NCBI RefSeq assembly: GCF_018977255.1
Contig: NW_024704836.1
Coordinates: 124,001-178,384 of the forward strand
Origin: Callorhinchus milii
Lineage: Eukaryota
DNA: 54,384 nt
Reading direction: 5' to 3'
Part shown: in pieces, positions 5,244 through 51,700 of the stretch
Numbering within the stretch: the stretch's first letter is position 1
Layout: every line of letters starts with the position of its first letter
Notes under the pieces: generated by a model
What the model was told of the DNA's origin: nothing
Seen by the model: the letters and a program-made list of their open reading frames with translations, nothing else
Database searches by the model: none
Translations under genes and position numbers: made by a program

Positions 5244-5292
5244 ATGAGTCTGTCCTTTCTCACCGTCTCTCTGATCTCCATCCTCTGGCCCT
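5244..5292 (+). CDS. TRBV: V5 leader exon
   Basis: 49-nt leader with a GTGAGT donor. Confidence 0.9.
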
Positions 5293-11781: not shown

Positions 11782-12055
11782 GAGTCCTGTAGCTCAGTAG
11801 TCAGAGCTCTCGCCTCGCAAGCAAGAGATCTGGGTTGGATTCCCGGCAGTGCGAAACCTTGGGCGAGTTTCCTTACCCACGCGCCTGACAATAACCCCTC
11901 AAGAGGAAAAAGAAAAACACAGTAAATTGGTCACTCAACCCACCACCGTTTGTGGGGACGGCGCTGTGCGCAATTAATTATACAGTTAATTCGCTTTACG
12001 GTATATTCTGTGAAGCGCTTTGAGACGTCTAGAAGACATGTAAAGCACTTTATCA
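11782..12055 (+). mobile_element. tRNA-derived SINE (Deu-SINE / SacSINE1-like tail)
   Basis: tRNA-like head GAGTCCTGTAGCTCAGT..GGTTGGATTCCC and tail TGTGAAGCGCTTTGAGACGTC. Many related fragments occur elsewhere (e.g. 7660-7750, 20460-20640, 22020-22200, 33790-34150, 35400-35660). The family name comes from recalled consensus. Confidence 0.7.
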
Positions 12056-12689: not shown

Positions 12690-13002
12690 ATAATAATCCT
12701 TGCATTTTGATATAGCGCTTTTCACGTCGGGAGGACGTCCCAAAGCGCTTCACAGAACACACTGTAAAGTGAATTGACTGTATATTTGTGGGCGAACGCG
12801 GCAGCCAATTGCGCACAGCAATGTCCCACAAACAGTCGTAGATTGAAAATGACCCATTTATTATTGTGTTTTGTTTTGGAGGATTATTATTAGGCTCTGT
12901 GTGGAGTAAGGAAACTTGCCCAAGGTTTCGCCCTCTGCCTGGAATTGAACTCAGGTCTCTCGCTTGCAAAGCGAGTGCTCTAACCACTGAGCTACAGGAC
13001 TC
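12690..13002 (-). mobile_element. tRNA(Ala)-like SINE, inverted relative to the 11782 copy
   Basis: Reverse complement head GAGTCCTGTAGCTCAGTGGTTAGAGCACTCGCTTTGCAAGCGAG..GAGTTCAATTCC, then the same body and an (ATT)n tail. Confidence 0.75.
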
Positions 13003-19928: not shown

Positions 19929-22419
19929 TTCCGAATCGGTGAAGATATTCCACAAGAGACAGAGAGAATATCATCAAAAATAAACCACTTTTAGTTTAAA
20001 TATTTCTTGGCCGGGGATGGGTTAGAGCAGAGAGCTCTCGAGAGGGGGAGCGAGCAGTACTACGATGGGGGAGATAGAGAGAGAGAGATAGCACTTGGGG
20101 TTAGAATAGAGAGCTTCAGTTTGGGGGGAATGAGCACCATTAAGTGCTCAAGCTGGAGGGAGATGGTTGGGGTTAGAGTAGAGAACTCCAGTGTGGTGAC
20201 ATGTGGGTGTGGTATGACCTTTACTGCACATAACAAATCTTTCGCTATTGTAACGTACAATTTACCGACTTGCACCGAGTAAGTGCTTCCATGTAGCGAC
20301 GTAGTTCCTTCGTTTATTAAATTCTGATTTTTATTCGCATTTAATTCTTATTCAGTTTTTTTCTCTCTCTCTCGTTGGTTTGAGGCCAGCCTCAAAATGG
20401 CTGTCAGAAGTGGCTTCCGGACGCTGTCAAAATGGCCACCAAAGGGAGTGACTCAAAATAATAATAATCATAATAATCCTTGCACTTGGTATCTGGAGCC
20501 TCAGCACGTCATCGCGACGTCTCAAAACGGTTAAGTGAATTGACTGTACGTTTCGTGGGTGAAACACAGCAGCCGACCGCGCAAAGCGGCGTCCCACAAA
20601 CAGTCGTGGATTGAAGTGACCAAACGGTTGGTCGTAGTTAGCGCTGCAGCTGTTTCTGCCTGTGTCTGTCTCTACCTGTCTTTGTATCTTGTGTCTCTCT
20701 CTGTGCCTGTACGCGTTTGTCTCTACGCGCGTTTGCCTGTGTGTGTGTGTGTGTGTGTGTGGGGTGTGTCTTTGTTTGTCTGTGTCGCTCTCCCTTCTGG
20801 CTCTTTCTGTCTGTATTTCTGTCTGGTTCTGTTTCCACTTGTCTGTCTAGGGCCGGGACCTATGTTTCTGTCTGTACGTGTCTGTAATTGTCTCGTCTGT
20901 CTTTGTTTCTGATTGTCTGCCACCCACCCCCACCCGCTCAAGACACTTGGAAAGATTATGACTCAAATTTCTAAGGCTCTGTTGATGTTGTAGAAAAAGG
21001 GTCGGGCGTGCGGGGGGGGAAAGAATTGGAGCGCTCGGATGTGGTGAGGTTTAGTTGTGGAAAGTTCTGCACTTTGTGCGTGTTTTTAATGTGAGCATTA
21101 AAGTGTTTGCAGACACCTGCTATCTCTCCCTTTCCTCCCCCCACCCCATCTCTCCTCAATCCACCCCGACCTAATACTGCATTCACTCTGCTCTCTGTCT
21201 GCATGTCTGTCTCTCCCTCTCTCTCTGTTTGTGTCTCCCACTCGCGCCTTCTCTATCTCTTTACCGTCTCTTTCCATTTCTCTCTTTATCTCTGTCTTTC
21301 TCTCGCTTACGCCGTAGCTCTCTGTCCTGTCTCGTTCGGTTCTCTTTCCCTCCGTATCTCTCTTTCAGTCTTTCCTTCGCCGTCTCACTCTTGTCACTGT
21401 CCAAAATCAAAATGGAAACAGAAGTCGCTGGGAGCACGCAGCAGGTCACAGGCAGCAGCTTGGGGGAAGAAAAGGAGTTAACCTTTCAGGTTGAAAGCCT
21501 TTCACCTGTTCCGACGAAAGGTTGTCGACCTGAAACGTTAGCTCATTTTCCTCTCTCTCCATAGATGCTGCCTGGCCTGGTGCGTGCTCCCAGCGACTTC
21601 TGTTTTTATCTCCAGATTTCCAGCATCTGCAGTGTTTTGCATTTTCTACAAGAATGTGTCTGCGTCCGCGTCTGCGTGTGTGTGTGTGTCTGTGTGTGTG
21701 TCACAAGATTGGTCTGAGTAAAGGAAGCCCTTCATCGCATCTGATCTATTCCCTTCAGAAGCCCCAACCGACCGTCCCCCCCATCACAGCATCGAACAGC
21801 TGTTTAAATGAGTCCCAGCGTCCAGTCCTCAAACGCACCCTCCTCTTGGTGACCTGCTCCAGTCTTTAATTACCCTCTGGATAAAGATAAACTGATCTCT
21901 GTCCTGAAATTGTCCTTTACATCCCTAAACCTGTGTCCTCTTGTTCTACTGTCATGATGCATCCTAAAGAATTGATCTGGGTGTCTTTATCAATTCCGTT
22001 TAAAATAAGAATCCGTGCATTAGATACAGCGCCTGATCACATCGTCGAGGCGTCTCAAAGTGTTTCACAGGATCTACTGCAAAGTGTGGTGACTGTATAT
22101 TTTGCGGGCGAAACACAGCAATCATTTTCCGCACAGCGACGGTCCCACAAACAGCCGTGGAGCGAGCGACCAATTTTGTTTGGGGGAAATGTTGGCCAGG
22201 TCACCAGAGAGAAATACCTTTTTCTTTTCAAATTGCACCACAGGAGATCTTTAACATTCATCTGAACAGGTCCTCCCCCCTCCCTGGACTGCACTGGAGC
22301 ATCAGCACACACTGTGTGATTCCAGCTCCCAACACGGGGCTTGAACCCACAACCTTGTGTTCAAAAGTCCAGATCCCGATGACTGAGCCACGCTGATACG
22401 TAAGCCTCTGGGTGGAATA

Positions 22420-23365: not shown

Positions 23366-23684
23366 CTGCTGGTTTATCCGACCTCAAATTTCCCTTATGC
23401 TCTGTGCTCTCTAAACTAGGTCAAGGGCTGGTGTCTCCACCCTCCCCCACCCCACCACCACTCTCTCTCTCTGTGTCCCTCGGGGAGATATCTGCCCTCT
23501 GTTGGCCAGTTGGCGTGATGATCTACTCATTCTCGCTCTCACGTTCTGTCTCTCTGTCTACATTGCTTTATTCTGTTGGAGAGTACAGGTGCCAGTGTGA
23601 AGCGGGGAGGGAGGTGGAGTGGCAGGAAGGGTGTGTGAGGAGTGAGGTTTATGAGTGAGCTTTCAGTCAATCTCTCTCACTGTG

Positions 23685-23989
23685 CTTATCTCTGGCTGCG
23701 CAGTAATACACCCCCTCCTGGGGCGCTCTCACCATTGAGATGTTCAGCCGAGATGTTGTCTGACCTTGCGATATGATCTCAAAATTACTCTGCTCGTCCT
23801 TCTCCATAGTCGGTGGGCTCGGATAGTAGGTAAAGCCGATCAGTCTCAGGCCCTCTCCATCTCTCTGCTGGTACCAGAGCATTACATCTTTACTGCTGTC
23901 ATTCTGGTGACAACCCAATAGCACAGAGTCGCTCTCTCTCACCACCGTCCTCGGAGGCCACTGATAGATCAGCTCGGCTGTCCCCCAGC
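23685..23989 (-). CDS. TRBV: Inverted TCR beta V exon downstream of C, apparently functional
   Basis: Open frame WGTAELIYQWP..LGCHQ..MLWYQQ..YYCAARDK with acceptor CCCTCAG. RSS is CACAGTG, 23 nt, TCATAAACC (23684-23646). Confidence 0.93.
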
Positions 23990-24902
23990 CTGAGGGAGAC
24001 ACAAGCATTGAAACAAAAGTGGGACTCGTTGCGAAGGGTAGTGACTTGTGTGTTGTGGGCCAACACGGCAGCCACTTCCAGGCAAACAGCCGTGACGATT
24101 GTATCTGTCGGCCGGGCACTGAGAGATAGACTTCGCCCCTCCCACTCCCACCCCACACATTGGTGGCGGTGGGCGGGGGAGTCGTTGCTGGGGTTTGACC
24201 AGCTTGTATCTCATGGCTTTTCCCCCCATTCTCCATTGTGAGCGCTGCGTGGCAAGTTTCACGCTACACAGACCGCCCCCAAACCAGGGCTTTGGATCAG
24301 GAGCTGATTGGGAAGAATCCTTGACCCCAGTGACCAGTCTGCTCCCCTATAAGTCCTGCTGCCAGACAGGCTGGGACCTGGAGAATTGTGGACCCTCTAG
24401 ACTCAGGAACCGGGTGACCAAGAGAACGAGACACACACATACAGATAGAGAACACACACACATATACATACACATGCAGATAGAGAACACCCACAAAGAT
24501 ACTCACACATATATACACACACACACACACACATATACATACACATGCAGATAGAGAACANNNNNNNNNNNNNNNNNNNNNNNNNNNNNNNNNNNNNNNN
24601 NNNNNNNNNNNNNNNNNNNNNNNNNNNNNNNNNNNNNNNNNNNNNNNNNNNNNNNNNNNNNNNNNNNNNNNNNNNNNNNNNNNNNNNNNNNNNNNNNNNN
24701 NNNNNNNNNNNNNNNNNNNNNNNNNNNNNCACAAACACACAGAGAACACATACAAATACTACATATACACACACACACAGATACACACACATGTACTGAT
24801 AGAGAGACAAATATAGAGCCTGAGACAGAGAGAGGGTGTAATATGAAATCCCAGTGTATTCAGGAGCCTGGGGGGAATTGAGAGATGTTGAGAGATACTC
24901 AC

Positions 24903-29189: not shown

Positions 29190-29583
29190 TCCTCGTCAAA
29201 GATGGCGCCGGGCGGGCGGCGTCACCCCCAAAAAAGGCGCCAAAACCAAACCACCAACCGCCAAAACCCCAGGCCCCGGATGTGGCGGTTGGCGGGCGCC
29301 TTTCGAATCCCTTTTTTTTTTCGCGGGCTACCCACAATGCCCCGGGCGCGGCTGTATAAGGCAGCGCTACCCACAATGCCACCGGCGCGGCTCTCCATAT
29401 AAGGCAGCGCTACCCACAGTGCCACCGGCTCGGCTCTCCATATAAGGCAGCGCTACCCACAATGCCACTGGCGCGGCTCTCCATATAAGGCAGCGCTACC
29501 CACAATGCCACCGGCGCGGTTCTCGCTCCCTATAAGTTCCGGCCGTGGCCGTCGTTCGGCCATTTTGTCGCCTGCGGTTTCAG
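29190..29583 (+). promoter_or_regulatory. CpG-rich promoter and first exon of the snoRNA host gene; 43-bp repeat carrying ZNF143-like and CArG motifs
   Basis: Five TACCCACA(A/G)TGCC units, three CCATATAAGG (29395, 29438, 29481), TATAAG at 29531 and YY1-like GCCATTTTG at 29559. CAG|GTGAGT donor after 29583. Confidence 0.65.
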
Positions 29584-29776
29584 GTGAGTGGACATGTCGC
29601 TCTGAGAGAGAGCGAGAGAGAGATGGCGGGTCAAGTCAATCCGGCGCCATCCTCCTCTCCCCGGCCTCACCGGGCCCCGAGTCGTACGGCTTTTCACGCC
29701 TCGGTACCCGATGGTTCTTTAGGCGCTATTATTTCTCCGCGCCCCCCCCCCTCCCGCCCGCCCCGGGGCCTCGGCT

Positions 29777-29860
29777 GTCTCGATGATGATGACCTTTCAC
29801 AGACCTGTACTGATGCAACCGTGATCGAGCCATGTTCCTCCTCAATGGAGCTGATGAGAC
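29777..29860 (+). ncRNA. SNORD25: C/D snoRNA U25 homologue (predicted 18S Gm1490)
   Basis: GTCTC/GAGAC stem, ATGATGA, and guide TCACAGACCTGT-A-CTGA complementary to 18S ACAGGUCUGUGA. Matches recalled human U25. Confidence 0.88.
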
Positions 29861-29889
29861 GAGCTGTGACTCCCGAGAAAGAATTGGGG

Positions 29890-30560
29890 GTGGGTGGGGC
29901 CGGGCACGATTTGGGAATTTTTTTTGAGGGGGGGTGGGAGCTGGAGGCGACCTGGGGGTTGGGGAGGAATGTGTGTGTGGGGTCGGGGAGGGGGGAATGT
30001 GTGTGGGGGATGTGTGTGGGGGGGGCGGGGAGGGGGGAAATGTGTGTGGGGGATGGGGAGGGGGAATTTGGGTGGGGAATGGGAGAGGGGAATGTGTGTG
30101 GGGGGGGGATGGGGAGGGGGGAAATGTGTGTGGGGGGGGCGGGGAGGGGGGAAATGTGTGTGGGGGGGCGGGGAGAGGGGAATGTGTGGGGGGGGCGGGG
30201 AGGGGGGAATTTGGGTGGGGGAATGGGGAGGGGGGAATGTGTGTGGGGGGGCGGGGGAGGGGGATGTGTGTGGGGGGGAGGGGAATGTGTGTGGGGGGGG
30301 GGGAGAGGGGAATGTGTGTGGGGGGGGAGAGAGGGGTGTGTGTATGGGGGGGCGGGGAAAGGGGAATGTGTGTGGGGGGGGAGAGGGTGTGTGTATGGGG
30401 GGGCGGGGAAAGGGGAATGTGTGTGTGTGGGGGGGGCGGGGAAAGGGAATGTGGGGGGGGGGGAGTGTGTGTGTGTGGGGGGGGGGAGAGGGGTGTGTGT
30501 ATGGGGGGGGCGGGGAGGGGGGAATGTGGGGGGGGGAAGAGGAAGCCATGGGTGTGGGGA
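29890..30560. repeat. G-rich degenerate tandem repeat (GGGGAGGGGGAATGTGTGTGGGGG) in host intron 1
   Basis: Dense G-runs. The poly-Pro/Gly ORFs here are artefacts. Confidence 0.9.
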
Positions 30561-31050: not shown

Positions 31051-31126
31051 GTGCCACCAAGATGAATTCACCTGAACTCTCTCTTTCTGCATAAACTGTG
31101 TAGAAACTTAATATTCTGAGTGGCAC
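31051..31126 (+). ncRNA. SNORD26: C/D snoRNA U26 homologue
   Basis: GTGCCAC/GTGGCAC stem, a GATGA box C variant, guide TGAACTCTCTCTT (28S AAGAGAGAGUUCA) and terminal ATTCTGAG, as in recalled human U26. Confidence 0.85.
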
Positions 31127-31686: not shown

Positions 31687-31770
31687 TGCTGTTCATGATG
31701 ATTCATAACAAATAGACAAGCATATATCTGAGTAAACCTTGATGCTCAAAACTTGTTCTGAAAAACAGCA
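31687..31770 (+). ncRNA. SNORD27: C/D snoRNA U27 homologue (predicted 18S Am27)
   Basis: TGCTGTT/AACAGCA stem and ATGATGA. Guide GACAAGCATAT puts nucleotide -5 opposite 18S A27; box D lies 84 nt upstream of the acceptor. Confidence 0.9.
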
Positions 31771-32514
31771 GTGGCCAGAAATGAACCGGTTTTTGTTGTT
31801 CCGGGCGCGTCGCAATCTGAAATGTTGTCCCGTTTCTCCCGGCAGGAGCACGCACCGCTGCTGAATGTGACCTCGTTTGTGCAAGCAAACTCGGCTCTAT
31901 CCCGTCGCCAAGGTTTGTATTTCTCTGGTCTCTGCAGACATCTCATAGCTGCGAGCAGCAGCTGTTTGTGGTGTCACCACTTGGACCTCTTAATCCCTGC
32001 CTGAAGTATTTGCCCGCTGCTTTTTGTAGATTTTAGCTGTTCCAAATGATAACAACAATAATCCTTGCATTTTATATCTTATTATTGGAATATAAATATC
32101 AAAATTTGATCTCTCAAAGACAGGATAAGGCACTACGCCAAATGCAAGGATTATTATTATTATACAGCGCTTGGATCACTTTGTTGGGACGTCTCAACGC
32201 GCTTCACAGAATACACTGTAAAGCGAATTGACTGTGATTTGCGGGTGAATCTCGGCAGCCAATTGCGCACAGCGACATCCCACAAACGGTTGTGGGCTGA
32301 GTGAACAAATTTGTTGGTTTATTCTGTGAAGCGCTCCAGCGAGACGTCTCAATATCAAACTCGAGGATGATTATTGTTAAAATGTGTCTTCTAGGCATAC
32401 GTCTGGGTTTGTCAGAAGCTCAGGAGCAGTCACTTAACAATAACTCTTCCCTTGATAGTGGAACACCTTTATTGCGGGGATGGGTCTGTGTGTGTGGTTA
32501 GGGTGTCACGTTCC

Positions 32515-32614
32515 CTGGTTTGAGAGGATGATATGGGTATTGCCCAGAAATAAGTGGACGGCATATTGTCGACTGATAATACTTTTTGAGTCACCAAAGC
32601 CCTGATCAAACCAG
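32515..32614 (+). ncRNA. Unassigned C/D snoRNA X in the U28 position, with 18S complementarity
   Basis: 9-bp stem CTGGTTTGA/TCAAACCAG, box C AGGATGA, D' CTGA at 32573 and D CTGA at 32602, 80 nt upstream of the acceptor. Guide is GAGTCACCAAAGCC. Confidence 0.78.
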
Positions 32615-33114
32615 TTGTACCTTGCGGTGTAGGTAGGCCGTTAGTTTTGAGTCTGTGCTCACGGTCTCCGCTTGTTCTGTTTCAGGAAATGGCCACGGCT
32701 GGGAAAAGGGGGTACACTTGGTGAGTACTAGTCTCGTTTCAATGTCTCTCGACTTGGAGCCTTTGCGTAGCAGAGCAACTTAGCTTGATCAGCGGCTTAA
32801 GCTTGAACGCTGCACCAGGCTGCAATAGCTACATGACCTGCCCCCCCCCTCCCCCTCCCCGCCAGTATCCCCAGCTTCAATCCCCGCAAACTGCGACTGT
32901 GTTCGCCCGCACTAAACTCCCTCTCCCCTGGCTTGGCGTGGGGTTCCGTGCTGCCAAGTGCTCCCGAGACACTGCCCGGCGTGACAGGCGCAGAGCAAGT
33001 GCATGTTGTCGACGGCCAAACCGCCATCGCCTGTAATTTATCCCTGTATCCTGCGTGCCGGGGAGTTGGGTCAGTGGCAGCCAGGCTTGATTTGTGGTCA
33101 GTGGTAGCGCATTG

Positions 33115-33240
33115 GTCCTCAGGATGACTTCATTGCATGTCTTATGTGTTGTCAGGAGCCAGAACCTGCAAAGGTGAACCCACTGGTATCTGCTGCATGA
33201 AATGAGGCGAACCTGTTACTTGTGAACTGTCTGATAGGAC
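33115..33240 (+). ncRNA. SNORD22: U22 snoRNA homologue (18S processing)
   Basis: GTCCT/AGGAC stem; CATGTCTTA, CCAGAACCTGCAAAGGTGAACCCACTGG and GAACTGTCTGA match recalled human U22. Confidence 0.9.
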
Positions 33241-34203: not shown

Positions 34204-34275
34204 GAAGTGCAATGATGAGGAACCTAGCTCACTTTGAATCCGTGTGAAAGCAACATTAAAAGCCTGAGCAACTTC
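34204..34275 (+). ncRNA. SNORD29: C/D snoRNA U29 homologue
   Basis: ATGATGA, guide CCTAGCTCAC (28S GUGAGCUGGG region) and box D at 34264, about 80 nt upstream of the acceptor. Confidence 0.85.
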
Positions 34276-35027: not shown

Positions 35028-35103
35028 TTGCTTGTATGATGATCTCACTCATGGAATCTCGTTCGACTGAACTTGTGATGTTACTCCGTGGTCTGAACAG
35101 CAA
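35028..35103 (+). ncRNA. SNORD30: C/D snoRNA U30 homologue
   Basis: ATGATGA and guide ATGGAATCTCGTTCG-A-CTGA as in recalled human U30; box D lies 80 nt upstream of the acceptor. Confidence 0.9.
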
Positions 35104-35825: not shown

Positions 35826-36292
35826 GATTTGACAGTGGGCGGGCGGGCCGGAGTGGGGGTACCTGGAGTAACCGACCCCGTTTGTCTGTGTTCCTTTGCA
35901 GGCACGAAACTCGGGAGCAACCGGCAAAGGTGAGCAGCAACCTGGGTAGCGTTGACAGTGGCTGAGCTGGGGGTGGGGTATGACCGTAGGCACCTCTCGA
36001 AGAGGAAGGTCTTCAGACACAACCTGAGGATCAGGATAATAATATTAATAAGACTTGCATTTGACACAGCGCCTCGTCATGTCTTTGAGACGTAGCAAAG
36101 CGCTTCACGGGACACACTGCAAAGTGTAGTAACTGTATTTTCTGGGCGAGAGATGTGGAAGGAAGGGGCAAGGCGGGTGAGGGGAGAGAGGAAGTGTCCC
36201 GGAGTTTCAGGATGTAGTGGCTGAAAGTACACTCATCCATTCCACCACCAGCGGCCGTGCTCTCAGCCGCCGTGCTCTACAGTAAAGCCCGA

Positions 36293-36366
36293 CTTCTTGT
36301 AATGACACTGTTACCGCCCCACTCTGTCTGAAATAAAGTGACTGATTGGTAACGTTCTGACTGGAG
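36293..36366 (+). ncRNA. SNORD31: First U31-like copy (class B prototype)
   Basis: GTAATGA..TTACCGCCCCACTCTGTCTGA..GTGACTGA..GGTAACGTTCTGA. Later class B copies with box C GTGATGA start at 37692, 38969, 40391, 41772, 43094, 44515, 45892, 47311, 48689, 50115, 51534, 52926 and 54297. Confidence 0.7.
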
Positions 36367-36708
36367 CCTTGGAATGCGCTCTCTCTTTCTCTCCTCTCTC
36401 CCTGGAGGGGCGCACCCTGCTTACCCAAGTATTAGGCGCAGGTTGGCAAGAGCCGAGACTTTTTGGCGGGCGGGGTTAACAGAGGTTAGCCGAGATCGCG
36501 GCGAAATTAGACATGATCAGGCGCTGGGTCAAACTCAGAAAGATTATTATTATTTAAGTAACGGGCAAAGTGAACTTTCTCCGCAGGACCTTGTACCTTA
36601 CGGAGCTGTGGAGGACAAAAGAGATCAGACCGAGGTAAGGTCGAGACACGTGTCCGCTCCACTCTTTAGGGGGTGGTGGTTTTCGCTGGAGGAATTAGTT
36701 TTAGCGGC

Positions 36709-36776
36709 TAAATATGTTGAGCCTGTTATCGCCCCAGTCTGATTGTTGGTGACTGAAACGGTAACCTCTGATTCAC
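36709..36776 (+). ncRNA. SNORD31: U31-like snoRNA class A (first of 13 copies)
   Basis: ATGTTGA..TATCGCCCCAGT-CTGA..GTGACTGAAACGGT..CTGA matches recalled human U31 (ACCGCCCCAGTCTGA..GTGACTGAAAGGT). Box C starts at 36714, 38136, 39418, 40839, 42223, 43542, 44958, 46336, 47757, 49139, 50564, 51974 and 53369. Confidence 0.8.
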
Positions 36777-39700
36777 TGCTGCTTTATCAGCATTTAACGG
36801 CCAGAGGACTCTTGTCCAGGGTTGGTTTTCGATCAGCCGGGTGTCTGACCACGCACGGAAACCCGGCACCGTGACCAGCCGGGTGTCTGACACGCACGGA
36901 AACCCGGCACCGTGACCAGCCGGGTGTCTGACACGCACGGAAACCCGGCACCGTGACCAGCCGGGTGTCTGACACGCGTGGACGCCTGTCCCCGTTTGCT
37001 TAAGGGTATCCAAACCCGACTGAGGATTCCCCACGTCCCACCCACACCCCAGAGTGTGCTGTCTGGCCAAGCTTTCCCGCTGCTTGTCCAGCGAGGACCC
37101 ACCCTCCCCGTTACTTATAGGGCTTTGGCTGCAGGATTAACAGGAGCTGAGGGAGGATTCCCTCAGTTTTAGGCCGGTCAGACAGGAGGTAGAGGGGAAG
37201 ACTAACATTGCTGCTTTGCTTGACCTTACCGGACCTTCTTTTCTATTTCAGCTATAACCAGGACATGAAGTGTTTGCTGGATTAAGGGGAACAGTGGGCT
37301 GACTCACTGAGGGCTGAACAGGTTCTTGTGGGACGGTAACCTTTCACCAATAGACACCAATCAATACTGGTGACCATTGAGGTTCACACGCAACTTACTT
37401 ACCTGGTGAGTTTCTGGGATCGCATCACAGAGTGGGGGTGGGGGAGAGGCTCACCTCATATGTTAAGCTGTCGGCTTCCCTTCAGAAAGAAAATAGGGGT
37501 AATAACTCGGTCACTCGACCCACGGCTGTTTGTGGGGACGTCGCTGGGCGCAATGGGCTGCCAGGTTTTGCCCCTCGGGAACGCACAGTCACTACGCTTT
37601 GCTGCGTATCCTGCAATGGGGTTGGAGACCTCTATTTGGGTCAAATGACGAGGGTTATTATCAGGCGGTGTACAGTAAAGCCCGGCTCTCTGTGATGACT
37701 CTGTTCCCGCCCACTTTGTCTGATATAAAGTGACTGAATGGTAACGTTCTGACTGGAGCCTTGGAATGCGCTCTCTCTCTCTCTCCTCCTCCCTCCCTCC
37801 CTGGAGGGGCGCACCCTGCTTACCCAATTCCGGAGAGTATTAGGCGCAGGTTGGCAGGAGCCGAGTCTTTTTGGCGGGGGGGGGGAGTTAACGGAGGTTA
37901 GTCGAGATCACAGCGAAATTTGCGCTTTTGAGACGTGATCAGGCGCTGCGTCAACCTCAGAAAGATTATTATTATTTAAGTAACGGGCAAAGTGATCTTT
38001 CTTCGCAGGACCTTGTACCTTACGGAGCTGTGGAGGACAAAAGAGATCAGACCGAGGTAAGGTCGAGACACGTGTCCGCTCCACTCTTTAGCGGGTGGTG
38101 GTTTTCGCTGGAGGAATTAGTTTTAGCGGCTAAATATGTTGAGCCTGTTATCGCCCCAGTCTGATTGTTGGTGACTGAAACGGTAACCTCTGATTCACTG
38201 CTGCTTTATCAGCATTTAACGGCCAGAGGACTCTTGTCCAGGGTTGGTTTTCGATCAGCCGGGTGTCTGACAACGCACGGAAACCCGGCGCCGTGACCAG
38301 CCGGGTGTCTGACACGCACGGAAACCCGGCACCGTGACCAGCCGGGTGTTTGACACGCACGGAAACCCGGCACCGTGACCAGCCGGGTGTCTGACACGCG
38401 TGGACACCTGTCCCCGTTTGCTTAAGGGTCTCCAAACCCGACTGAGGATTCCCCACGTCCCACCCACACCCCAGAGTGTGCTGTCTGGCCAAGCTTTCCC
38501 GCTGCTTGTCCAGCGAGGACCCACCCTCCCCGTTACTTATAGGGCTTTGGCTGCAGGATTAACAGGAGCTGAGGGAGGATTCCCTCAGTTTTAGGCCGGT
38601 CAGACAGTAGGTAGAGGGGAAGACTAACATTGCTGCTTTGCTTGACCTTACCGGACCTTCTTTTCTATTTCAGCTTTTACCAGGACATGAAGTGTTTGCT
38701 GGATTAAGGGGAACAGTGGGCTGACTCACTGAGGGCTGAACAGGTTCTTGTGGGACGGTAACCTTTCACCAATAGACACCAATCAATACTTGTGACCATT
38801 GAGGTTCACACGCAACTGACTTACCTGGTGAGTTTCTGGGATCGCATCACAGAGTGGGGGGGGGAGAGGCTCACCTCATATGTTAAGCTGTCGGCTTCCC
38901 TTCAGAAAGAAAATAGGGGGAATGACGAGGGTTATTATCAGGCGGTGTACAGTAAAGCCCGGCTCTCTGTGATGACTCTGTGCCCACCCACTTTGTCTGA
39001 TATAAAGTGACTGAATGGTAACGTTCTGACTGGAGCCTTGGGATGCGCTCTCTCTCTCTCTCCTCCCTCCCTCCCTGGAGGGGCGCACCCTGCTTACCCA
39101 ATTCCGGAGAGTATTAGGCGCAGGTTGGCAGGAGCCGAGTCTTTTTGGCGGGGGGGGGGTGGGGTGGAGTTAACGGAGGTTAGTCGAGATCACAGCGAAA
39201 TTTGCGCTTTTGAGACGTGATCAGGCGCTGCGTCAACCTCAGAAAGATTATTATTATTTAAGTAACGGGCAAAGTGATCTTTCTTCGCAGGACCTTGTAC
39301 CTTACGGAGCTGTGGAGGACAAAAGAGATCAGACCGAGGTAAGGTCGAGACACGTGTCCGCTCCACTCTTTAGCGGGTGGTGGTTTTCGCTGGAGGAATT
39401 AGTTTTAGCGGCTAAATATGTTGAGCCTGTTATCGCCCCAGTCTGATTGTTGGTGACTGAAACGGTTACCTCTGATTCACTGCTGCTTTATCAGCATTTA
39501 ACGGCCAGAGGACTCTTGTCCAGGGTTGGTTTTCGATCAGCCGGGTGTCTGACAACGCACGGAAACCCGGCACCGTGACCAGCCGGGTGTCTGACACGCA
39601 CGGAAACCCGGCACCGTGACCAGCCGGGTGTCTGACACGCACGGAAACCCGGCACCGTGACCAGCCGGGTGTCTGACACGCGTGGACGCCTGTCCCCGTT

Positions 39701-42700
39701 TGCTTAAGGGTATCCAAACCCGACTGAGGATTCCCCACGTCCCACCCACACCCCAGAGTGTGCTGTCTGGCCAAGCTTTCCCGCTGCTTGTCCAGCGAGG
39801 ACCCACCCTCCCCGTTACTTATAGGGCTTTGGCTGCAGGATTAACAGGAGCTGAGGGAGGATTCCCTCAGTTTTAGGCCGGTCAGACAGTAGGTAGAGGG
39901 GAAGACTAACATTGCTGCTTTGCTTGACCTTACCGGACCTTCTTTTCTATTTCAGCTATAACCAGGACATGAAGTGTTTGCTGGATTAAGGGGAACAGTG
40001 GGCTGACTCACTGAGGGCTGAACAGGTTCTTGTGGGACGGTAACCTTTCACCAATAGACACCAATCAATACTGGTGACCATTGAGGTTCACACGCAACTT
40101 ACTTACCTGGTGAGTTTCTGGGATCGCATCACAGAGTGGGGGGAGAGGCTCACCTCACATGTTAAGCTGTCGGCTTCCCTTCAGAAAGAAAATAGGGGTA
40201 ATAACTCGGTCACTCGACCCACGGCTGTTTGTGGGGACGTCGCTGGGCGCAATGGGCTGCCAGGTTTTGCCCCTCGGGAACGCACAGTCACTACGCTTTG
40301 CTGCGTATCCTGCAATGGGGTTGGAGACCTCTATTTCGGTCAAATGACGAGGGTTATTATCAGGCGGTGTACAGTAAAGCCCGGCTCTCTGTGATGACTC
40401 TGTTCCCGCCCACTTTGTCTGATATAAAGTGACTGAATGGTAACGTTCTGACTGGAGCCTTGGGATGCGCTCTCTCTCTCTCTCTCCTCCTCCCTCCCTC
40501 CCTGGAGGGGCGCACCCTGCTTACCCAATTCCGGAGAGTATTAGGCGCAGGTTGGCAGGAGCCGAGTCTTTTTGGCGGGGGGGGGGGGAGTTAACGGAGG
40601 TTAGCCGAGATCACAGCGAAATTTGCGCTTTTGAGACGTGATCAGGCGCTGCGTCAACCTCAGAAAGATTATTATTATTTAAGTAACGGGCAAAGTGATC
40701 TTTCTTCGCAGGACCTTGTACCTTACGGAGCTGTGGAGGACAAAAGAGATCAGACCGAGGTAAGGTCGAGACACGTGTCCGCTCCACTCTTTAGCGGGTG
40801 GTGGTTTTCGCTGGAGGAATTAGTTTTAGCGGCTAAATATGTTGAGCCTGTTATCGCCCCAGTCTGATTGTTGGTGACTGAAACGGTAACCTCTGATTCA
40901 CTGCTGCTTTATCAGCATTTAACGGCCAGAGGACTCTTGTCCAGGGTTGGTTTTCGATCAGCCGGGTGTCTGACACGCACGGAAACCCGGCACCGTGACC
41001 AGCCGGGTGTCTGACACGCACGGAAACCCGGCACCGTGACCAGCCCCGGTGTCTGACACGCGTGGACGCCTGTCCCCGTTTGCTTAAGGGTATCCAAACC
41101 CGACTGAGGATTCCCCACGTCCCACCCACACCCCAGAGTGTGCTGTCTGGCCAAGCTTTCCCGCTGCTTGTCCAGCGAGGACCCACCCTCCCCGTTACTT
41201 ATAGGGCTTTGGCTGCAGGATTAACAGGAGCTGAGGGAGGATTCCCTCAGTTTTAGGCCGGTCAGACAGTAGGTAGAGGGGAAGACTAACATTGCTGCTT
41301 TGCTTGACCTTACCGGACCTTCTTTTCTATTTCAGCTATAACCAGGACATGAAGTGTTTGCTGGATTAAGGGGAACAGTGGGCTGACTCACTGAGGGCTG
41401 AACAGGTTCTTGTGGGACGGTAACCTTTCACCAATAGACACCAATCAATACTGGTGACCATTGAGGTTCACACGCAACTTACTTACCTGGTGAGTTTCTG
41501 GGATCGCATCACAGAGTGGGGGGGGGAGGCTCACCTCACATGTTAAGCTGTCGGCTTCCCTTCAGAAAGAAAATAGGGGTAATAACTCGGTCACTCGACC
41601 CACGGCTGTTTGTGGGGACGTCGCTGGGCGCAATGGGCTGCCAGGTTTTGCCCCTCGGGAACGCACAGTCACTACGCTTTGCTGCGTATCCTGCAATGGG
41701 GTTGGAGACCTCTATTTGGGTCAAATGACGAGGGTTATTATCAGGCGGTGTACAGTAAAGCCCGGCTCTCTGTGATGACTCTGTTCCCGCCCACTTTGTC
41801 TGATATAAAGTGACTGAATGGTAACGTTCTGACTGGAGCCTTGGGATGCGCTCTCTCTCTCTCTCTCTCCTCCTCCCTCCCTCCCTGGAGGGGCGCACCC
41901 TGCTTACCCAATTCCGGAGAGTATTAGGCGCAGGTTGGCAGGAGCCGAGTCTTTTTGGCGGGGGGGGGGGGGAGTTAACGGAGGTTAGCCGAGATCACAG
42001 CGAAATTTGCGCTTTTGAGACGTGATCAGGCGCTGCGTCAACCTCAGAAAGATTATTATTATTTAAGTAACGGGCAAAGTGATCTTTCTTCGCAGGACCT
42101 TGTACCTTACGGAGCTGTGGAGGACAAAAGAGATCAGACCGAGGTAAGGTCGAGACACGTGTCCGCTCCACTCTTTAGCGGGTGGTGGTTTTCGCTGGAG
42201 GAATTAGTTTTAGCGGCTAAATATGTTGAGCCTGTTATCGCCCCAGTCTGATTGTTGGTGACTGAAACGGTAACCTCTGATTCACTGCTGCTTTATCAGC
42301 ATTTAACGGCCAGAGGACTCTTGTCCAGGGTTGGTTTTCGATCAGCCGGGTGTCTGACAACGCACGGAAACCCGGCACCGTGACCAGCCGGGTGTCTGAC
42401 ACGCACGGAAACCCGGCACCGTGACCAGCCGGGTGTCTGACACGCACGGAAACCCGGCACCGTGACCAGCCGGGTGTCTGACACGCACGGAAACCCGGCA
42501 CCGTGACCAGCCGGGTGTCTGACACGCGTGGACGCCTGTCCCCGTTTGCTTAAGGGTCTCCAAACCCGACTGAGGATTCCCCACGTCCCACCCACACCCC
42601 AGAGTGTGCTGTCTGGCCAAGCTTTCCCGCTGCTTGTCCAGCGAGGACCCACCCTCCCCGTTACTTATAGGGCTTTGGCTGCAGGATTAACAGGAGCTGA

Positions 42701-45700
42701 GGGAGGATTCCCTCAGTTTTAGGCCGGTCAGACAGTAGGTAGAGGGGAAGACTAACATTGCTGCTTTGCTTGACCTTACCGGACCTTCTTTTCTATTTCA
42801 GCTATAACCAGGACATGAAGTGTTTGCTGGATTAAGGGGAACAGTGGGCTGACTCACTGAGGGCTGAACAGGTTCTTGTGGGACGGTAACCTTTCACCAA
42901 TAGACACCAATCAATACTGGTGACCATTGAGGTTCACACGCAACTTACTTACCTGGTGAGTTTCTGGGATCGCATCACAGAGTGGGGGGAGAGGCTCACC
43001 TCACATGTTAAGCTATCGGCTTCCCTTCAGAAAGAAAATAGGGGGAATGACGAGGGTTATTATCAGGCGGTGTACAGTAAAGCCCGGCTCTCTGTGATGA
43101 CTCTGTTCCCGCCCACTTTGTCTGATATAAAGTGACTGAATGGTAACGTTCTGACTGGAGCCTTGGGATGCGCCCCCTCTCTCTCTCCTCCTCCCTCCCT
43201 CCCTGGAGGGGCGCACCCTGCTTACCCAATTCCGGAGAGTATTAGGCGCAGGTTGGCAGGAGCCGAGTCTTTTTGGCGGGGAGGGGGGGGGAGTTAACGG
43301 AGGTTAGCCGAGATCACAGCGAAATTTGCGCTTTTGAGACGTGATCAGGCGCTGCGTCAACCTCAGAAAGATTATTATTATTTAAGTAACGGGCAAAGTG
43401 ATCTTTCTTCGCAGGACCTTGTACCTTACGGAGCTGTGGAGGACAAAAGAGATCAGACCGAGGTAAGGTCGAGACACGTGTCCGCTCCACTCTTTAGCGG
43501 GTGGTGGTTTTCGCTGGAGGAATTAGTTTTAGCGGCTAAATATGTTGAGCCTGTTATCGCCCCAGTCTGATTGTTGGTGACTGAAACGGTAACCTCTGAT
43601 TCACTGCTGCTTTATCAGCATTTAACGGCCAGAGGACTCTTGTCCAGGGTTGGTTTTCGATCAGCCGGGTGTCTGACACGCACGGAAACCCGGCACCGTG
43701 ACCAGCCGGGTGTCTGACACGCACGGAAACCCGGCACCGTGACCAGCCGGGTGTCTGACACGCACGGAAACCCGGCACCGTGACCAGCCGGGTGTCTGAC
43801 ACGCGTGGACGCCTGTCCCCGTTTGCTTAAGGGTATCCAAACCCGACTGAGGATTCCCCACGTCCCACCCACACCCCAGAGTGTGCTGTCTGGCCAAGCT
43901 TTCCCGCTGCTTGTCCAGCGAGGACCCACCCTCCCCGTTACTTATAGGGCTTTGGCTGCAGGATTAACAGGAGCTGAGGGAGGATTCCCTCAGTTTTAGG
44001 CCGGTCAGACAGTAGGTAGAGGGGAAGACTAACATTGCTGCTTTGCTTGACCTTACCGGACCTTCTTTTCTATTTCAGCTATAACCAGGACATGAAGTGT
44101 TTGCTGGATTAAGGGGAACAGTGGGCTGACTCACTGAGGGCTGAACAGGTTCTTGTGGGACGGTAACCTTTCACCAATAGACACCAATCAATACTGGTGA
44201 CCATTGAGGTTCACACGCAACTTACTTACCTGGTGAGTTTCTGGGATCGCATCACAGAGTGGGGGGGGGAGGCTCACCTCACATGTTAAGCTGTCGGCTT
44301 CCCTTCAGAAAGAAAATAGGGGTAATAACTCGGTCACTCGACCCACGGCTGTTTGTGGGGACGTCGCTGGGCGCAATGGGCTGCCAGGTTTTGCCCCTCG
44401 GGAACGCACAGTCACTACGCTTTGCTGCGTATCCTGCAATGGGGTTGGAGACCTCTATTTGGGTCAAATGACGAGGGTTATTATCAGGCGGTGTACAGTA
44501 AAGCCCGGCTCTCTGTGATGACTCTGTTCCCGCCCACTTTGTCTGATATAAAGTGACTGAATGGTAACGTTCTGACTGGAGCCTTGGGATGCGCTCTCTC
44601 TCTCTCCTCCTCCCTCCCTCCCTGGAGGGGCGCACCCTGCTTACCCAATTCCGGAGAGTATTAGGCGCAGGTTGGCAGGAGCCGAGTCTTTTTGGCGGGG
44701 GGGGGGGAGTTAACGGAGGTTAGTCGAGATCACAGCGAAATTTGCGCTTTTGAGACGTGATCAGGCGCTGCGTCAACCTCAGAAAGATTATTATTATTTA
44801 AGTAACGGGCAAAGTGATCTTTCTTCGCAGGACCTTGTACCTTACGGAGCTGTGGAGGACAAAAGAGATCAGACCGAGGTAAGGTCGAGACACGTGTCCG
44901 CTCCACTCTTTAGCGGGTGGTGGTTTTCGCTGGAGGAATTAGTTTTAGCGGCTAAATATGTTGAGCCTGTTATCGCCCCAGTCTGATTGTTGGTGACTGA
45001 AACGGTAACCTCTGATTCACTGCTGCTTTATCAGCATTTAACGGCCAGAGGACTCTTGTCCAGGGTTGGTTTTCGATCAGCCGGGTGTCTGACAACGCAC
45101 GGAAACCCGGCACCGTGACCAGCCGGGTGTCTGACACGCACGGAAACCCGGCACCGTGACCAGCCGGGTGTCTGACACGCGTGGACGCCTGTCCCCGTTT
45201 GCTTAAGGGTCTCCAAACCCGACTGAGGATTCCCCACGTCCCACCCACACCCCAGAGTGTGCTGTCTGGCCAAGCTTTCCCGCTGCTTGTCCAGCGAGGA
45301 CCCACCCTCCCCGTTACTTATAGGGCTTTGGCTGCAGGATTAACAGGAGCTGAGGGAGGATTCCCTCAGTTTTAGGCCGGTCAGACAGTAGGTAGAGGGG
45401 AAGACTAACATTGCTGCTTTGCTTGACCTTACCGGACCTTCTTTTCTATTTCAGCTATAACCAGGACATGAAGTGTTTGCTGGATTAAGGGGAACAGTGG
45501 GCTGACTCACTGAGGGCTGAACAGGTTCTTGTGGGACGGTAACCTTTCACCAATAGACACCAATCAATACTGGTGACCATTGAGGTTCACACGCAACTTA
45601 CTTACCTGGTGAGTTTCTGGGATCGCATCACAGAGTGGGGGGGGAGAGGCTCACCTCACATGTTAAGCTGTCGGCTTCCCTTCAGAAAGAAAATAGGGGT

Positions 45701-48700
45701 AATAACTCGGTCACTCGACCCAAGGCTGTTTGTGGGGACGTCGCTGGGCGCAATGGGCTGCCAGGTTTTGCCCCTCGGGAACGCACAGTCACTACGCTTT
45801 GCTGCGTATCCTGCAATGGGGTTGGAGACCTCTATTTGGGTCAAATGACGAGGGTTATTATCAGGCGGTGTACAGTAAAGCCCGGCTCTCTGTGATGACT
45901 CTGTTCCCGCCCACTTTGTCTGATATAAAGTGACTGAATGGTAACGTTCTGACTGGAGCCTTGGGATGCGCTCTCTCTCTCTCTCCTCCCTCCCTCCCTG
46001 GAGGGGCGCACCCTGCTTACCCAATTCCGGAGAGTATTAGGCGCAGGTTGGCAGGAGCCGAGTCTTTTTGGCGGGGGGGGGGGGGAGTTAACGGAGGTTA
46101 GCCGAGATCACAGCGAAATTTGCGCTTTTGAGACGTGATCAGGCGCTGCGTCAACCTCAGAAAGATTATTATTATTTAAGTAACGGGCAAAGTGATCTTT
46201 CTTCGCAGGACCTTGTACCTTACGGAGCTGTGGAGGACAAAAGAGATCAGACCGAGGTAAGGTCGAGACACGTGTCCGCTCCACTCTTTAGCGGGTGGTG
46301 GTTTTCGCTGGAGGAATTAGTTTTAGCGGCTAAATATGTTGAGCCTGTTATCGCCCCAGTCTGATTGTTGGTGACTGAAACGGTAACCTCTGATTCACTG
46401 CTGCTTTATCAGCATTTAACGGCCAGAGGACTCTTGTCCAGGGTTGGTTTTCGATCAGCCGGGTGTCTGACAACGCACGGAAACCCGGCACCGTGACCAG
46501 CCGGGTGTCTGACACGCACGGAAACCCGGCACCGTGACCAGCCGGGTGTCTGACACGCACGGAAACCCGGCACCGTGACCAGCCGGGTGTCTGACACGCG
46601 TGGACGCCTGTCCCCGTTTGCTTAAGGGTATCCAAACCCGACTGAGGATTCCCCACGTCCCACCCACACCCCAGAGTGTGCTGTCTGGCCAAGCTTTCCC
46701 GCTGCTTGTCCAGCGAGGACCCACCCTCCCCGTTACTTATAGGGCTTTGGCTGCAGGATTAACAGGAGCTGAGGGAGGATTCCCTCAGTTTTAGGCCGGT
46801 CAGACAGTAGGTAGAGGGGAAGACTAACATTGCTGCTTTGCTTGACCTTACCGGACCTTCTTTTCTATTTCAGCTATAACCAGGACATGAAGTGTTTGCT
46901 GGATTAAGGGGAACAGTGGGCTGACTCACTGAGGGCTGAACAGGTTCTTGTGGGACGGTAACCTTTCACCAATAGACACCAATCAATACTGGTGACCATT
47001 GAGGTTCACACGCAACTTACTTACCTGGTGAGTTTCTGGGATCGCATCACAGAGTGGGGGGGGAGAGGCTCACCTCACATGTTAAGCTGTCGGCTTCCCT
47101 TCAGAAAGAAAATAGGGGTAATAACTCGGTCACTCGACCCACGGCTGTTTGTGGGGACGTCGCTGGGCGCAATGGGCTGCCAGGTTTTGCCCCTCGGGAA
47201 CGCACAGTCACTACGCTTTGCTGCGTATCCTGCAATGGGGTTGGAGACCTCTATTTCGGTCAAATGACGAGGGTTATTATCAGGCGGTGTACAGTAAAGC
47301 CCGGCTCTCTGTGATGACTCTGTTCCCGCCCACTTTGTCTGATATAAAGTGACTGAATGGTAACGTTCTGACTGGAGCCTTGGGATGCGCTCTCTCTCTC
47401 TCTCCTCCCTCCCTCCCTGGAGGGGCGCACCCTGCTTACCCAATTCCGGAGAGTATTAGGCGCAGGTTGGCAGGAGCCGAGTCTTTTTGGCGGGGGGGGG
47501 GGGGGGAGTTAACGGAGGTTAGCCGAGATCACAGCGAAATTTGCGCTTTTGAGACGTGATCAGGCGCTGCGTCAACCTCAGAAAGATTATTATTATTTAA
47601 GTAACGGGCAAAGTGATCTTTCTTCGCAGGACCTTGTACCTTACGGAGCTGTGGAGGACAAAAGAGATCAGACCGAGGTAAGGTCGAGACACGTGTCCGC
47701 TCCACTCTTTAGCGGGTGGTGGTTTTCGCTGGAGGAATTAGTTTTAGCGGCTAAATATGTTGAGCCTGTTATCGCCCCAGTCTGATTGTTGGTGACTGAA
47801 ACGGTAACCTCTGATTCACTGCTGCTTTATCAGCATTTAACGGCCAGAGGACTCTTGTCCAGGGTTGGTTTTCGATCAGCCGGGTGTCTGACAACGCACG
47901 GAAACCCGGCACCGTGACCAGCCGGGTGTCTGACACGCACGGAAACCCGGCACCGTGACCAGCCGGGTGTCTGACACGCGTGGACGCCTGTCCCCGTTTG
48001 CTTAAGGGTATCCAAACCCGACTGAGGATTCCCCACGTCCCACCCACACCCCAGAGTGTGCTGTCTGGCCAAGCTTTCCCGCTGCTTGTCCAGCGAGGAC
48101 CCACCCTCCCCGTTACTTATAGGGCTTTGGCTGCAGGATTAACAGGAGCTGAGGGAGGATTCCCTCAGTTTTAGGCCGGTCAGACAGTAGGTAGAGGGGA
48201 AGACTAACATTGCTGCTTTGCTTGACCTTACCGGACCTTCTTTTCTATTTCAGCTATAACCAGGACATGAAGTGTTTGCTGGATTAAGGGGAACAGTGGG
48301 CTGACTCACTGAGGGCTGAACAGGTTCTTGTGGGACGGTAACCTTTCACCAATAGACACCAATCAATACTGGTGACCATTGAGGTTCACACGCAACTTAC
48401 TTACCTGGTGAGTTTCTGGGATCGCATCACAGAGTGGGGGGAGAGGCTCACCTCACATGTTAAGCTGTCGGCTTCTCTTCAGAAAGAAAATAGGGGTAAT
48501 AACTCGGTCACTCGACCCACGGCTGTTTGTGGGGACGTCGCTGGGCGCAATGGGCTGCCAGGTTTTGCCCCTCGGGAACGCACAGTCACTACGCTTTGCT
48601 GCGTATCCTGCAATGGGGTTGGAGACCTCTATTTGGGTCAAATGACGAGGGTTATTATCAGGCGGTGTACAGTAAAGCCCGGCTCTCTGTGATGACTCTG

Positions 48701-51700
48701 TGCCCACCCACTTTGTCTGATATAAAGTGACTGAATGGTAACGTTCTGACTGGAGCCTTGGGATGCGCTCTCTCTCTCTCTCTCTCCTCCTCCCTCCCTC
48801 CCTGGAGGGGCGCACCCTGCTTACCCAATTCCGGAGAGTATTAGGCGCAGGTTGGCAGGAGCCGAGTCTTTTTGGCGGGGGGGGGGGGAGTTAACGGAGG
48901 TTAGCCGAGATCACAGCGAAATTTGCGCTTTTGAGACGTGATCAGGCGCTGCGTCAACCTCAGAAAGATTATTATTATTTAAGTAACGGGCAAAGTGATC
49001 TTTCTTCGCAGGACCTTGTACCTTACGGAGCTGTGGAGGACAAAAGAGATCAGACCGAGGTAAGGTCGAGACACGTGTCCGCTCCACTCTTTAGCGGGTG
49101 GTGGTTTTCGCTGGAGGAATTAGTTTTAGCGGCTAAATATGTTGAGCCTGTTATCGCCCCAGTCTGATTGTTGGTGACTGAAACGGTAACCTCTGATTCA
49201 CTGCTGCTTTATCAGCATTTAACGGCCAGAGGACTCTTGTCCAGGGTTGGTTTTCGATCAGCCGGGTGTCTGACAACGCACGGAAACCCGGCACCGTGAC
49301 CAGCCGGGTGTCTGACACGCACGGAAACCCGGCACCGTGACCAGCCGGGTGTCTGACACGCACGGAAACCCGGCACCGTGACCAGCCGGGTGTCTGACAC
49401 GCGTGGACACCTGTCCCCGTTTGCTTAAGGGTCTCCAAACCCGACTGAGGATTCCCCACGTCCCACCCACACCCCAGAGTGTGCTGTCTGGCCAAGCTTT
49501 CCCGCTGCTTGTCCAGCGAGGACCCACCCTCCCCGTTACTTATAGGGCTTTGGCTGCAGGATTAACAGGAGCTGAGGGAGGATTCCCTCAGTTTTAGGCC
49601 GGTCAGACAGTAGGTAGAGGGGAAGACTAACATTGCTGCTTTGCTTGACCTTACCGGACCTTCTTTTCTATTTCAGCTATAACCAGGACATGAAGTGTTT
49701 GCTGGATTAAGGGGAACAGTGGGCTGACTCACTGAGGGCTGAACAGGTTCTTGTGGGACGGTAACCTTTCACCAATAGACACCAATCAATACTGGTGACC
49801 ATTGAGGTTCACACGCAACTTACTTACCTGGTGAGTTTCTGGGATCGCATCACAGAGTGGGGGGGGGAGAGGCTCACCTCACATGTTAAGCTGTCGGCTT
49901 CCCTTCAGAAAGAAAATAGGGGTAATAACTCGGTCACTCGACCCACGGCTGTTTGTGGGGACGTCGCTGGGCGCAATGGGCTGCCAGGTTTTGCCCCTCG
50001 GGAACGCACAGTCACTACGCTTTGCGGCGTAACCTGCAATGGGGTTGGAGACCTCTATTTGGGTCAAATGACGAGGGTTATTATCAGGCGGTGTACAGTA
50101 AAGCCCGGCTCTCTGTGATGACTCTGTTCCCGCCCACTTTGTCTGATATAAAGTGACTGAATGGTAACGTTCTGACTGGAGCCTTGGGATGCGGCCCCTC
50201 TCTCTCTCCTCCTCCCTCCCTCCCTGGAGGGGCGCACCCTGCTTACCCAATTCCGGAGAGTATTAGGCGCAGGTTGGCAGGAGCCGAGTCTTTTTGGCGG
50301 GGGGGGGGGGGGGAGTTAACGGAGGTTAGCCGAGATCACAGCGAAATTTGCGCTTTTGAGACGTGATCAGGCGCTGCGTCAACCTCAGAAAGATTATTAT
50401 TATTTAAGTAACGGGCAAAGTGATCTTTCTTCGCAGGACCTTGTACCTTACGGAGCTGTGGAGGACAAAAGAGATCAGACCGAGGTAAGGTCGAGACACG
50501 TGTCCGCTCCACTCTTTAGCGGGTGGTGGTTTTCGCTGGAGGAATTAGTTTTAGCGGCTAAATATGTTGAGCCTGTTATCGCCCCAGTCTGATTGTTGGT
50601 GACTGAAACGGTAACCTCTGATTCACTGCTGCTTTATCAGCATTTAACGGCCAGAGGACTCTTGTCCAGGGTTGGTTTTCGATCAGCCGGGTGTCTGACA
50701 ACGCACGGAAACCCGGCACCGTGACCAGCCGGGTGTACACGCACGGAAACCCGGCACCGTGACCAGCCGGGTGTCTGACACGCACGGAAACCCGGCACCG
50801 TGACCAGCCGGGTGTCTGACACGCGTGGACGCCTGTCCCCGTTTGCTTAAGGGTATCCAAACCCGACTGAGGATTCCCCACGTCCCACCCACACCCCAGA
50901 GTGTGCTGTCTGGCCAAGCTTTCCCGCTGCTTGTCCAGCGAGGACCCACCCTCCCCGTTACTTATAGGGCTTTGGCTGCAGGATTAACAGGAGCTGAGGG
51001 AGGATTCCCTCAGTTTTAGGCCGGTCAGACAGTAGGTAGAGGGGAAGACTAACATTGCTGCTTTGCTTGACCTTACCGGACCTTCTTTTCTATTTCAGCT
51101 ATAACCAGGACATGAAGTGTTTGCTGGATTAAGGGGAACAGTGGGCTGACTCACTGAGGGCTGAACAGGTTCTTGTGGGACGGTAACCTTTCACCAATAG
51201 ACACCAATCAATACTGGTGACCATTGAGGTTCACACGCAACTTACTTACCTGGTGAGTTTCTGGGATCGCATCACAGAGTGGGGGGAGAGGCTCACCTCA
51301 CATGTTAAGCTGTCGGCTTCCCTTCAGAAAGAAAATAGGGGTAATAACTCGGTCACTCGACCCACGGCTGTTTGTGGGGACGTCGCTGGGCGCAATGGGC
51401 TGCCAGGTTTTGCCCCTCGGGAACGCACAGTCACTACGCTTTGCTGCGTATCCTGCAATGGGGTTGGAGACCTCTATTTGGGTCAAATGACGAGGGTTAT
51501 TATCAGGCGGTGTACAGTAAAGCCCGGCTCTCTGTGATGACTCTGTTCCCGCCCACTTTGTCTGATATAAAGTGACTGAATGGTAACGTTCTGACTGGAG
51601 CCTTGGAATGCGCTCTCTCTCCTCCTCCCTCCCTCCCTGGAGGGGCGCACCCTGCTTACCCAATTCCGGAGAGTATTAGGCGCAGGTTGGCAGGAGCCGA

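Follow-up and report, generated by a model that had tools for sequence, protein, structure and literature searches.

A Putative Intronic Box C/D snoRNA in an SNHG1/UHG-Like Gene of the Elephant Shark and Its Relation to the Xenopus 18S-Um252 Guide

A 100-nt element on the plus strand (32515–32614) of a 54,384-nt stretch of Callorhinchus milii DNA, referred to here as the window, is very probably an intron-borne box C/D snoRNA of an SNHG1/UHG-like host gene, orthologous to the Xenopus tropicalis guide xtmg18S-U252 and sharing its target with the guide of zebrafish Um286/Um287; its expression, assembly into a snoRNP, and methylation activity are what we infer from this assignment. The element adds an ortholog to a family already published but missing from Rfam; it is neither a new kind of snoRNA nor a new site. 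The novelty implied by a preliminary description of the locus did not hold, since the target site and the guide RNA had both been published already (PMC7668251, PMC8797249, PMC6984369).

Anatomy and Predicted Fold of the Candidate

The limits of the candidate were drawn from its sequence, its predicted fold, and an alignment with the frog guide. Its box C and box D ends are joined by a terminal stem of 9 perfect base pairs between CUGGUUUGA (DNA CTGGTTTGA, 32515–32523) and UCAAACCAG (DNA TCAAACCAG, 32606–32614). Box C, AGGAUGA (DNA AGGATGA, 32525–32531), differs from RUGAUGA only at position 2, where G replaces U, and the same departure occurs in the frog, where the box is identical in all 7 positions. 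Box D, CUGA (DNA CTGA, 32602–32605), is also identical in the frog, and flush against it lies the 14-nt antisense element GAGUCACCAAAGCC (DNA GAGTCACCAAAGCC, 32588–32601). The full C/D architecture claimed in the preliminary description is therefore present, from the 9-bp stem and the two boxes to the guide adjoining box D. The predicted fold of the 100 nt retains the terminal stem, with a minimum free energy (MFE) of −28.4 kcal/mol and a z-score of −2.57 relative to shuffled sequences.

Immediately 3′ of box C is an element kept in the frog, UGGGUAUUGCCCA (32534–32546), predicted to form a 5-bp hairpin that appears in both the MFE fold and the consensus fold and is closed by a U-G pair here and by a U-A pair in the frog. 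Neither 18S nor 5.8S rRNA offers this element a target of at least 10 nt. A D′ guide was considered and rejected, as both candidate upstream elements reached at most 9 consecutive pairs with 18S or 5.8S, G-U pairs included. The sequence CUGAUAA at 32573–32579 is a candidate for a degenerate box C′, or alternatively holds a box D′ (CUGA); its UGA aligns with the same three letters in the frog sequence. In this model, the 5′ half of the candidate appears to be a conserved hairpin rather than a second guide, consistent with a single-guide snoRNA.

Complementarity to 18S rRNA

The guide GAGUCACCAAAGCC is the exact reverse complement of the 18S segment GGCUUUGGUGACUC, which occurs once in human 18S rRNA, at 282–295. 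The human reference (1869 nt) was validated by the expected base at 39/39 published Nm positions; the target pairing was computed on this human sequence, and the conservation of the segment in the elephant shark is extrapolated from human, frog, and zebrafish. In agreement with this pairing, which the preliminary description had proposed for the 14 nt before box D, a human 18S FISH probe, 'tatctagagtcaccaaagcc', contains the exact antisense string (PMC13743745). By the D+5 rule, the predicted target is the middle U of CUUUG (GGCUUUGG), which is U286 in human 18S numbering and thus matches, exact to the nucleotide, the position near U286 that had been suggested; +6 corresponds to U287.

The chance that a 14-mer at a fixed place complements 18S is approximately 7e-6, while about 0.76 perfect 14-mers are expected by chance over both strands of the window. 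A chance origin is excluded; this perfect 14-mer, moreover, lies directly against a D box and within a C/D arrangement. Besides the candidate, the only plus-strand matches of at least 12 nt adjoining a D-type box in the whole window are the guides of SNORD25 and SNORD27. Anatomy and complementarity together confirm the candidate, at the level of its sequence, as a genuine box C/D methylation-guide snoRNA.

Frog and Zebrafish Counterparts

Comparison with published methylation maps, which the preliminary description had recommended for fish and frog, revealed that the site is methylated in both zebrafish (PMC7668251) and Xenopus (PMC8797249). RiboMeth-seq in zebrafish mapped SSU-Um286 and Um287, in human numbering, at the base of 9es3b-c, and counted them among ten sites "not known from other vertebrates" (PMC7668251, Ramachandran et al. 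2020). Both are high-confidence sites, defined by a score >0.75, and U287 was attributed to a single assigned guide that modifies both +5 and +6 (PMC7668251). The likeness of the candidate to this zebrafish guide is one of target alone, comprising the same nucleotides and the +5/+6 geometry predicted for the candidate. In X. laevis, RiboMethSeq detected 18S-Um252, which is unmodified in human and is hypomodified in the frog at all stages, with scores of ~0.33 (~33%) (PMC8797249, Delhermite et al. 2022). As the preliminary description had supposed, the site is not a standard human one; the zebrafish and Xenopus papers both report it as unmodified in human (PMC7668251, PMC8797249).

The X. laevis Um252 guide is given as UGAAAGGAUGAAUGGGUUUUACCCACUAUUUACUGGACGACACAAGUCAUAUGACAUUAAGUCACCAAAGCCCUGAUC in S3 Table of Delhermite et al., with a sequence ending in AAGUCACCAAAGCCCUGAUC, and is equated there with X. 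tropicalis xtmg18S-U252 of Deryusheva et al. 2020 (PMC8797249; PMC6984369). Deryusheva et al. described such RNAs as Xenopus-specific or non-human, the modifications being present in frog and not in human rRNA (PMC6984369). A full-text literature search for the guide string or the snoRNA names returned nothing beyond these zebrafish and Xenopus reports.

Alignment of the candidate with the X. laevis guide gave 62 identical positions out of 78. The guide plus box D agree in 17 of 18 positions, the antisense element itself sharing 13 of its 14 nt with the frog element (AAGUCACCAAAGCC). Outside the boxes and the guide, 33 of 47 positions (70%) are identical. The internal alignment score of 46 compares with 22.5 ± 3.9 for shuffled sequences and was equalled by none of 5000 shuffles, a similarity that argues for orthology with the frog guide and against convergence on the guide. 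The hairpin element and the +5 target U are shared along with both boxes, whereas the interior of the candidate exceeds that of the frog RNA by ~9 nt and has an additional U-rich run ahead of the guide; the candidate also comes from a chimaera rather than a frog. On the basis of these two sequences, the candidate is the ortholog of the Xenopus 18S-Um252 guide.

Host Gene and Neighbouring snoRNAs

Splice consensus places the candidate in an intron at 31913–32685 of the plus strand, bounded by AAG/GTTTGT and TTTCAG/G, between a putative upstream non-coding exon of an SNHG1/UHG-like host (31846–31912) and a putative downstream non-coding exon (32686–32720), both exons being drawn from splice consensus only. 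The 3′ end of the candidate is 71 nt from the inferred 3′ splice site (AG acceptor at 32685), compared with 80 nt for SNORD27 and 82 nt for SNORD22. Judged by these signals, the candidate is intronic and at a processing-competent distance from its inferred 3′ splice site.

The host is laid out, again by splice consensus, as short putative exons with one snoRNA per intron, all on the plus strand. SNORD25, the 18S-G1490 guide (~29768–29869), was recognized by an antisense match adjoining a D-type box, and SNORD26 (31054–31124) exceeded the Rfam threshold. SNORD27, the 18S-A27 guide (AGACAAGCAUAU, 31690–31765), is located in the intron directly preceding that of the candidate; it scored 35.7 bits, below the Rfam gathering threshold, and has a 12-nt antisense to 18S 25–36 adjoining AUCUGA. 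SNORD22 (33116–33240; Rfam 72.7 bits, E = 4.9e-14) occupies the intron directly following. Further downstream are SNORD29 (34207–34272), SNORD30 (35032–35101), and a SNORD31-like element (36292–36366), all with sub-threshold Rfam matches, and 13 tandem copies of SNORD31 above threshold, from 36708 to 53430. This set, SNORD25, 26, 27, 22, 29, 30, and 31, is that of the mammalian U22 host gene SNHG1/UHG. The candidate shares with these snoRNAs its host, the arrangement of one per intron, and a similar distance to the 3′ splice site; they differ from it in their guides and in belonging to families conserved to human, where the family of the candidate is not found.

Several other features of the host gene were recorded. 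In the SNORD30 homolog, UCUCGUUCG adjoins ACUGA and is antisense to 18S 1380–1388, a guide that fits the dual 18S-A1383/28S-A3804 role described for SNORD30 of zebrafish. Toward its 3′ end, the host consists of a tandem array (36292–54384, plus strand) with no fewer than 13 units, each ~1.3–1.4 kb in length, that runs off the end of the window. Each unit holds one SNORD31 (48.4 bits; 46.4 bits in 2 of the 13 copies), a second and weaker SNORD31-like C/D snoRNA with C box CUGUGAUGAC, D box CUGA, and a 6-bp stem, and one 41-nt minisatellite. Human SNHG1 has a single SNORD31. A long G-rich minisatellite with 27–28-nt and 56-nt periods (29990–30537, plus strand) fills most of the SNORD25 intron and accounts for the position of SNORD25 at ~1 kb from its 3′ splice site; the distance is ~380 nt for SNORD26 and 71–82 nt for SNORD27, the candidate, and SNORD22. 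Immediately 5′ of the putative first host exon, a 43-nt unit is repeated 4.7 times (29327–29524, plus strand). Every unit includes a CArG-like motif, CCATATAAGG, and a Staf/ZNF143-like one, CCCACAATGC, and the repeat may be a reiterated promoter element. The intron of the candidate also contains, upstream of the snoRNA, two long hairpin-forming inverted repeats (32041–32175 and 32178–32358, plus strand), both with weak scores against unrelated plant miRNA models, which may be transposon remnants. A second AGGATGA in this intron, at 32365, was rejected as a box C; neither a D box nor a stem accompanies it, and it gave only an 18-bit partial match to snoZ7.

Database Searches and Relation to SNORD28

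Rfam searches, run at gathering thresholds and at E ≤ 10, covered the 9.5-kb locus, the 171-nt element, and what remained of the intron. The candidate matched no Rfam family at either setting, even in the 171-nt search, so that neither U28 nor any other known family is indicated for it, a check that the preliminary description had itself proposed. The SNORD28 model (RF00085) in particular had no match at E ≤ 10 to the candidate or to the rest of its intron. The U28-type guide TAGCATGCCAGAG had no match in the window with up to 2 mismatches, and no antisense of at least 9 nt over 18S C1391 stands next to a D box anywhere in the window, in line with the earlier statement that no U28-type guide was noticed.

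Outside the window, a search for GATGA-N(40–70)-guide+D matched one metagenome contig (n = 1), which has no terminal stem and appears protist-like and protein-coding; it was judged to be a chance match. The guide plus box D had 10 matches in MAGs of a bacterial and archaeal genome collection, approximately the chance expectation.

In human SNHG1, SNORD28 (U28) is located in the intron directly after SNORD27. The candidate lies in the intron directly after that of SNORD27 and so, given this human order, in the "U28 slot" to which it had been assigned. SNORD22 directly follows the candidate in the elephant-shark gene, unlike in the human coordinates, which suggests that the order of the snoRNAs is not strictly conserved. 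SNORD28, the 18S-Cm1391 guide, and the candidate are both box C/D snoRNAs of an SNHG1/UHG host and, by the assumed human order, of the post-SNORD27 intron, but the candidate lacks a match to the SNORD28 covariance model, its antisense element differs, and the window has no C1391 guide.

One reading of this placement is that the candidate descends from SNORD28 and that its antisense element was swapped in situ, from 18S-C1391 to 18S-U286. The occupied intron and the absence of a C1391 guide from the window would both be explained, and a comparison of Xenopus with human has shown that snoRNA families can exchange antisense elements (PMC6984369). We nevertheless consider a swap unlikely, given that the SNORD28 model failed to match at E ≤ 10 even in the 171-nt search and that the frog ortholog of the candidate coexists with SNORD28 in Xenopus, so that their shared ancestor must already have had two distinct families. 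The same observation weighs on the proposal, made in the preliminary description, that one snoRNA took the place of another inside a conserved intron: SNORD28 (18S-Cm1353) and the Um252 guide are both present in Xenopus (PMC8797249), and that proposal is not supported. Differential loss of two neighbours fits the data at least as well as a replacement of U28.

Other Features of the Window

Positions 1–5820 (plus strand) and 23667–24236 (minus strand) hold a cluster of germline V-set segments of immunoglobulin/TCR type, spaced 1.2–1.7 kb apart, in which a terminal YYCAAR precedes a CACAGTG heptamer. For the V-set domain encoded at 1660–2211, the database relatives are all C. milii proteins; UniRef A0A4W3IZI8 (C. 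milii) is 100% identical over 112 aa to positions 5480–5815, an identity that marks the window as DNA of the elephant shark, a holocephalan. Minus-strand near matches to the snoRNA guide at 14, 1770, 3190, 4371, and 5491 fall on the sense strand of these V-set segments and were rejected as snoRNAs; they are explained by the V-set coding motif ...LVTQ.... Two convergent tRNA-Ala genes ~1.1 kb apart, at 11783–11854 (plus strand) and 12930–13000 (minus strand), with anticodons CGC and TGC, are located in the stretch that separates the V-segment clusters from the gene hosting the snoRNAs.

A 15-nt perfect antisense to 18S 120–134 (GGAGCGAGCGACCAA) is present at 22159–22173 (plus strand), without an adjoining D box or a C/D frame. 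About 0.2 such matches are expected in the window, and chance is a plausible origin.

Proposed Function

The steps proposed here for the candidate are modelled on established box C/D snoRNP biology. Following splicing, the intron would be debranched and trimmed by exonucleases down to the terminal stem and kink-turn, releasing an RNA that would assemble with SNU13, NOP56, NOP58, and fibrillarin. The 14-nt element would then pair with pre-18S at GGCUUUGGUGACUC (282–295), at the base of expansion segment 9es3, where fibrillarin would 2′-O-methylate the U opposite the fifth nucleotide of the guide (human U286), with possible spill-over to +6 (U287) as in zebrafish. By analogy with the ~33% seen in X. 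laevis, methylation in the elephant shark may be partial.

The low modification of the frog site, ~0.33 at every stage (PMC8797249), together with the length of the 14-bp duplex, could also be taken to mean that the candidate acts mainly as a base-pairing chaperone for the folding of 9es3 in pre-18S, with methylation a minor or dispensable by-product. We regard this as very unlikely, in view of an antisense element that directly adjoins box D, in precisely the placement needed for methylation, of zebrafish sites mapped with high confidence at scores >0.75 (PMC7668251), and of there being no known processing phenotype. It is barely credible that the candidate is a relic that is decaying or not expressed, or that its C/D-like layout arose by chance: the deviation of box C from its consensus at one position would agree with decay, but the boxes are intact and identical to those of the frog, the 9-bp stem and the perfect 14-mer guide have been retained between chimaera and frog, the guide alone has a chance probability of ~7e-6, and the spacing to the inferred splice site is canonical. 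A methylation guide thus remains our preferred reading of the candidate.

Age and Loss of the Guide Family

The family is common to chimaera and frog and the site is methylated in a teleost, which dates the family to the jawed-vertebrate ancestor. The candidate fits an old vertebrate guide that is absent from human rRNA maps and was lost in mammals, and the suggestion of an ancestral guide lost in humans is accordingly the part of the preliminary description's evolutionary argument that we retain: the family occurs in chimaera and frog, a teleost methylates the same site, and the human map lacks it.

As a more tentative possibility, doubtful on present data, Xenopus Um252 and zebrafish Um286/Um287 could be one ancestral jawed-vertebrate modification, made by one ancient SNHG1-resident family that was the original neighbour or alternative occupant of the SNORD28 intron. 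Mammals would then have lost the guide, the elephant shark would have lost SNORD28 together with 18S-Cm1391, and this reciprocal loss could be tied to the remodelling of 9es3.

Apart from the family linkage, the candidate is an ordinary snoRNA that follows textbook rules. The linkage connects three records that have been treated separately, namely, a "non-human" snoRNA of the frog, a "novel" site of the zebrafish, and a gene of a chimaera. Since the family has no Rfam model, it is missed by automatic annotation, and the frog and chimaera sequences (with that of zebrafish) could seed a model of the Rfam type. If these records represent one family, it would be roughly 450 million years old, and the comparison gives a sharper view of the rRNA methylations that are ancestral and of those that disappeared along the line to mammals.
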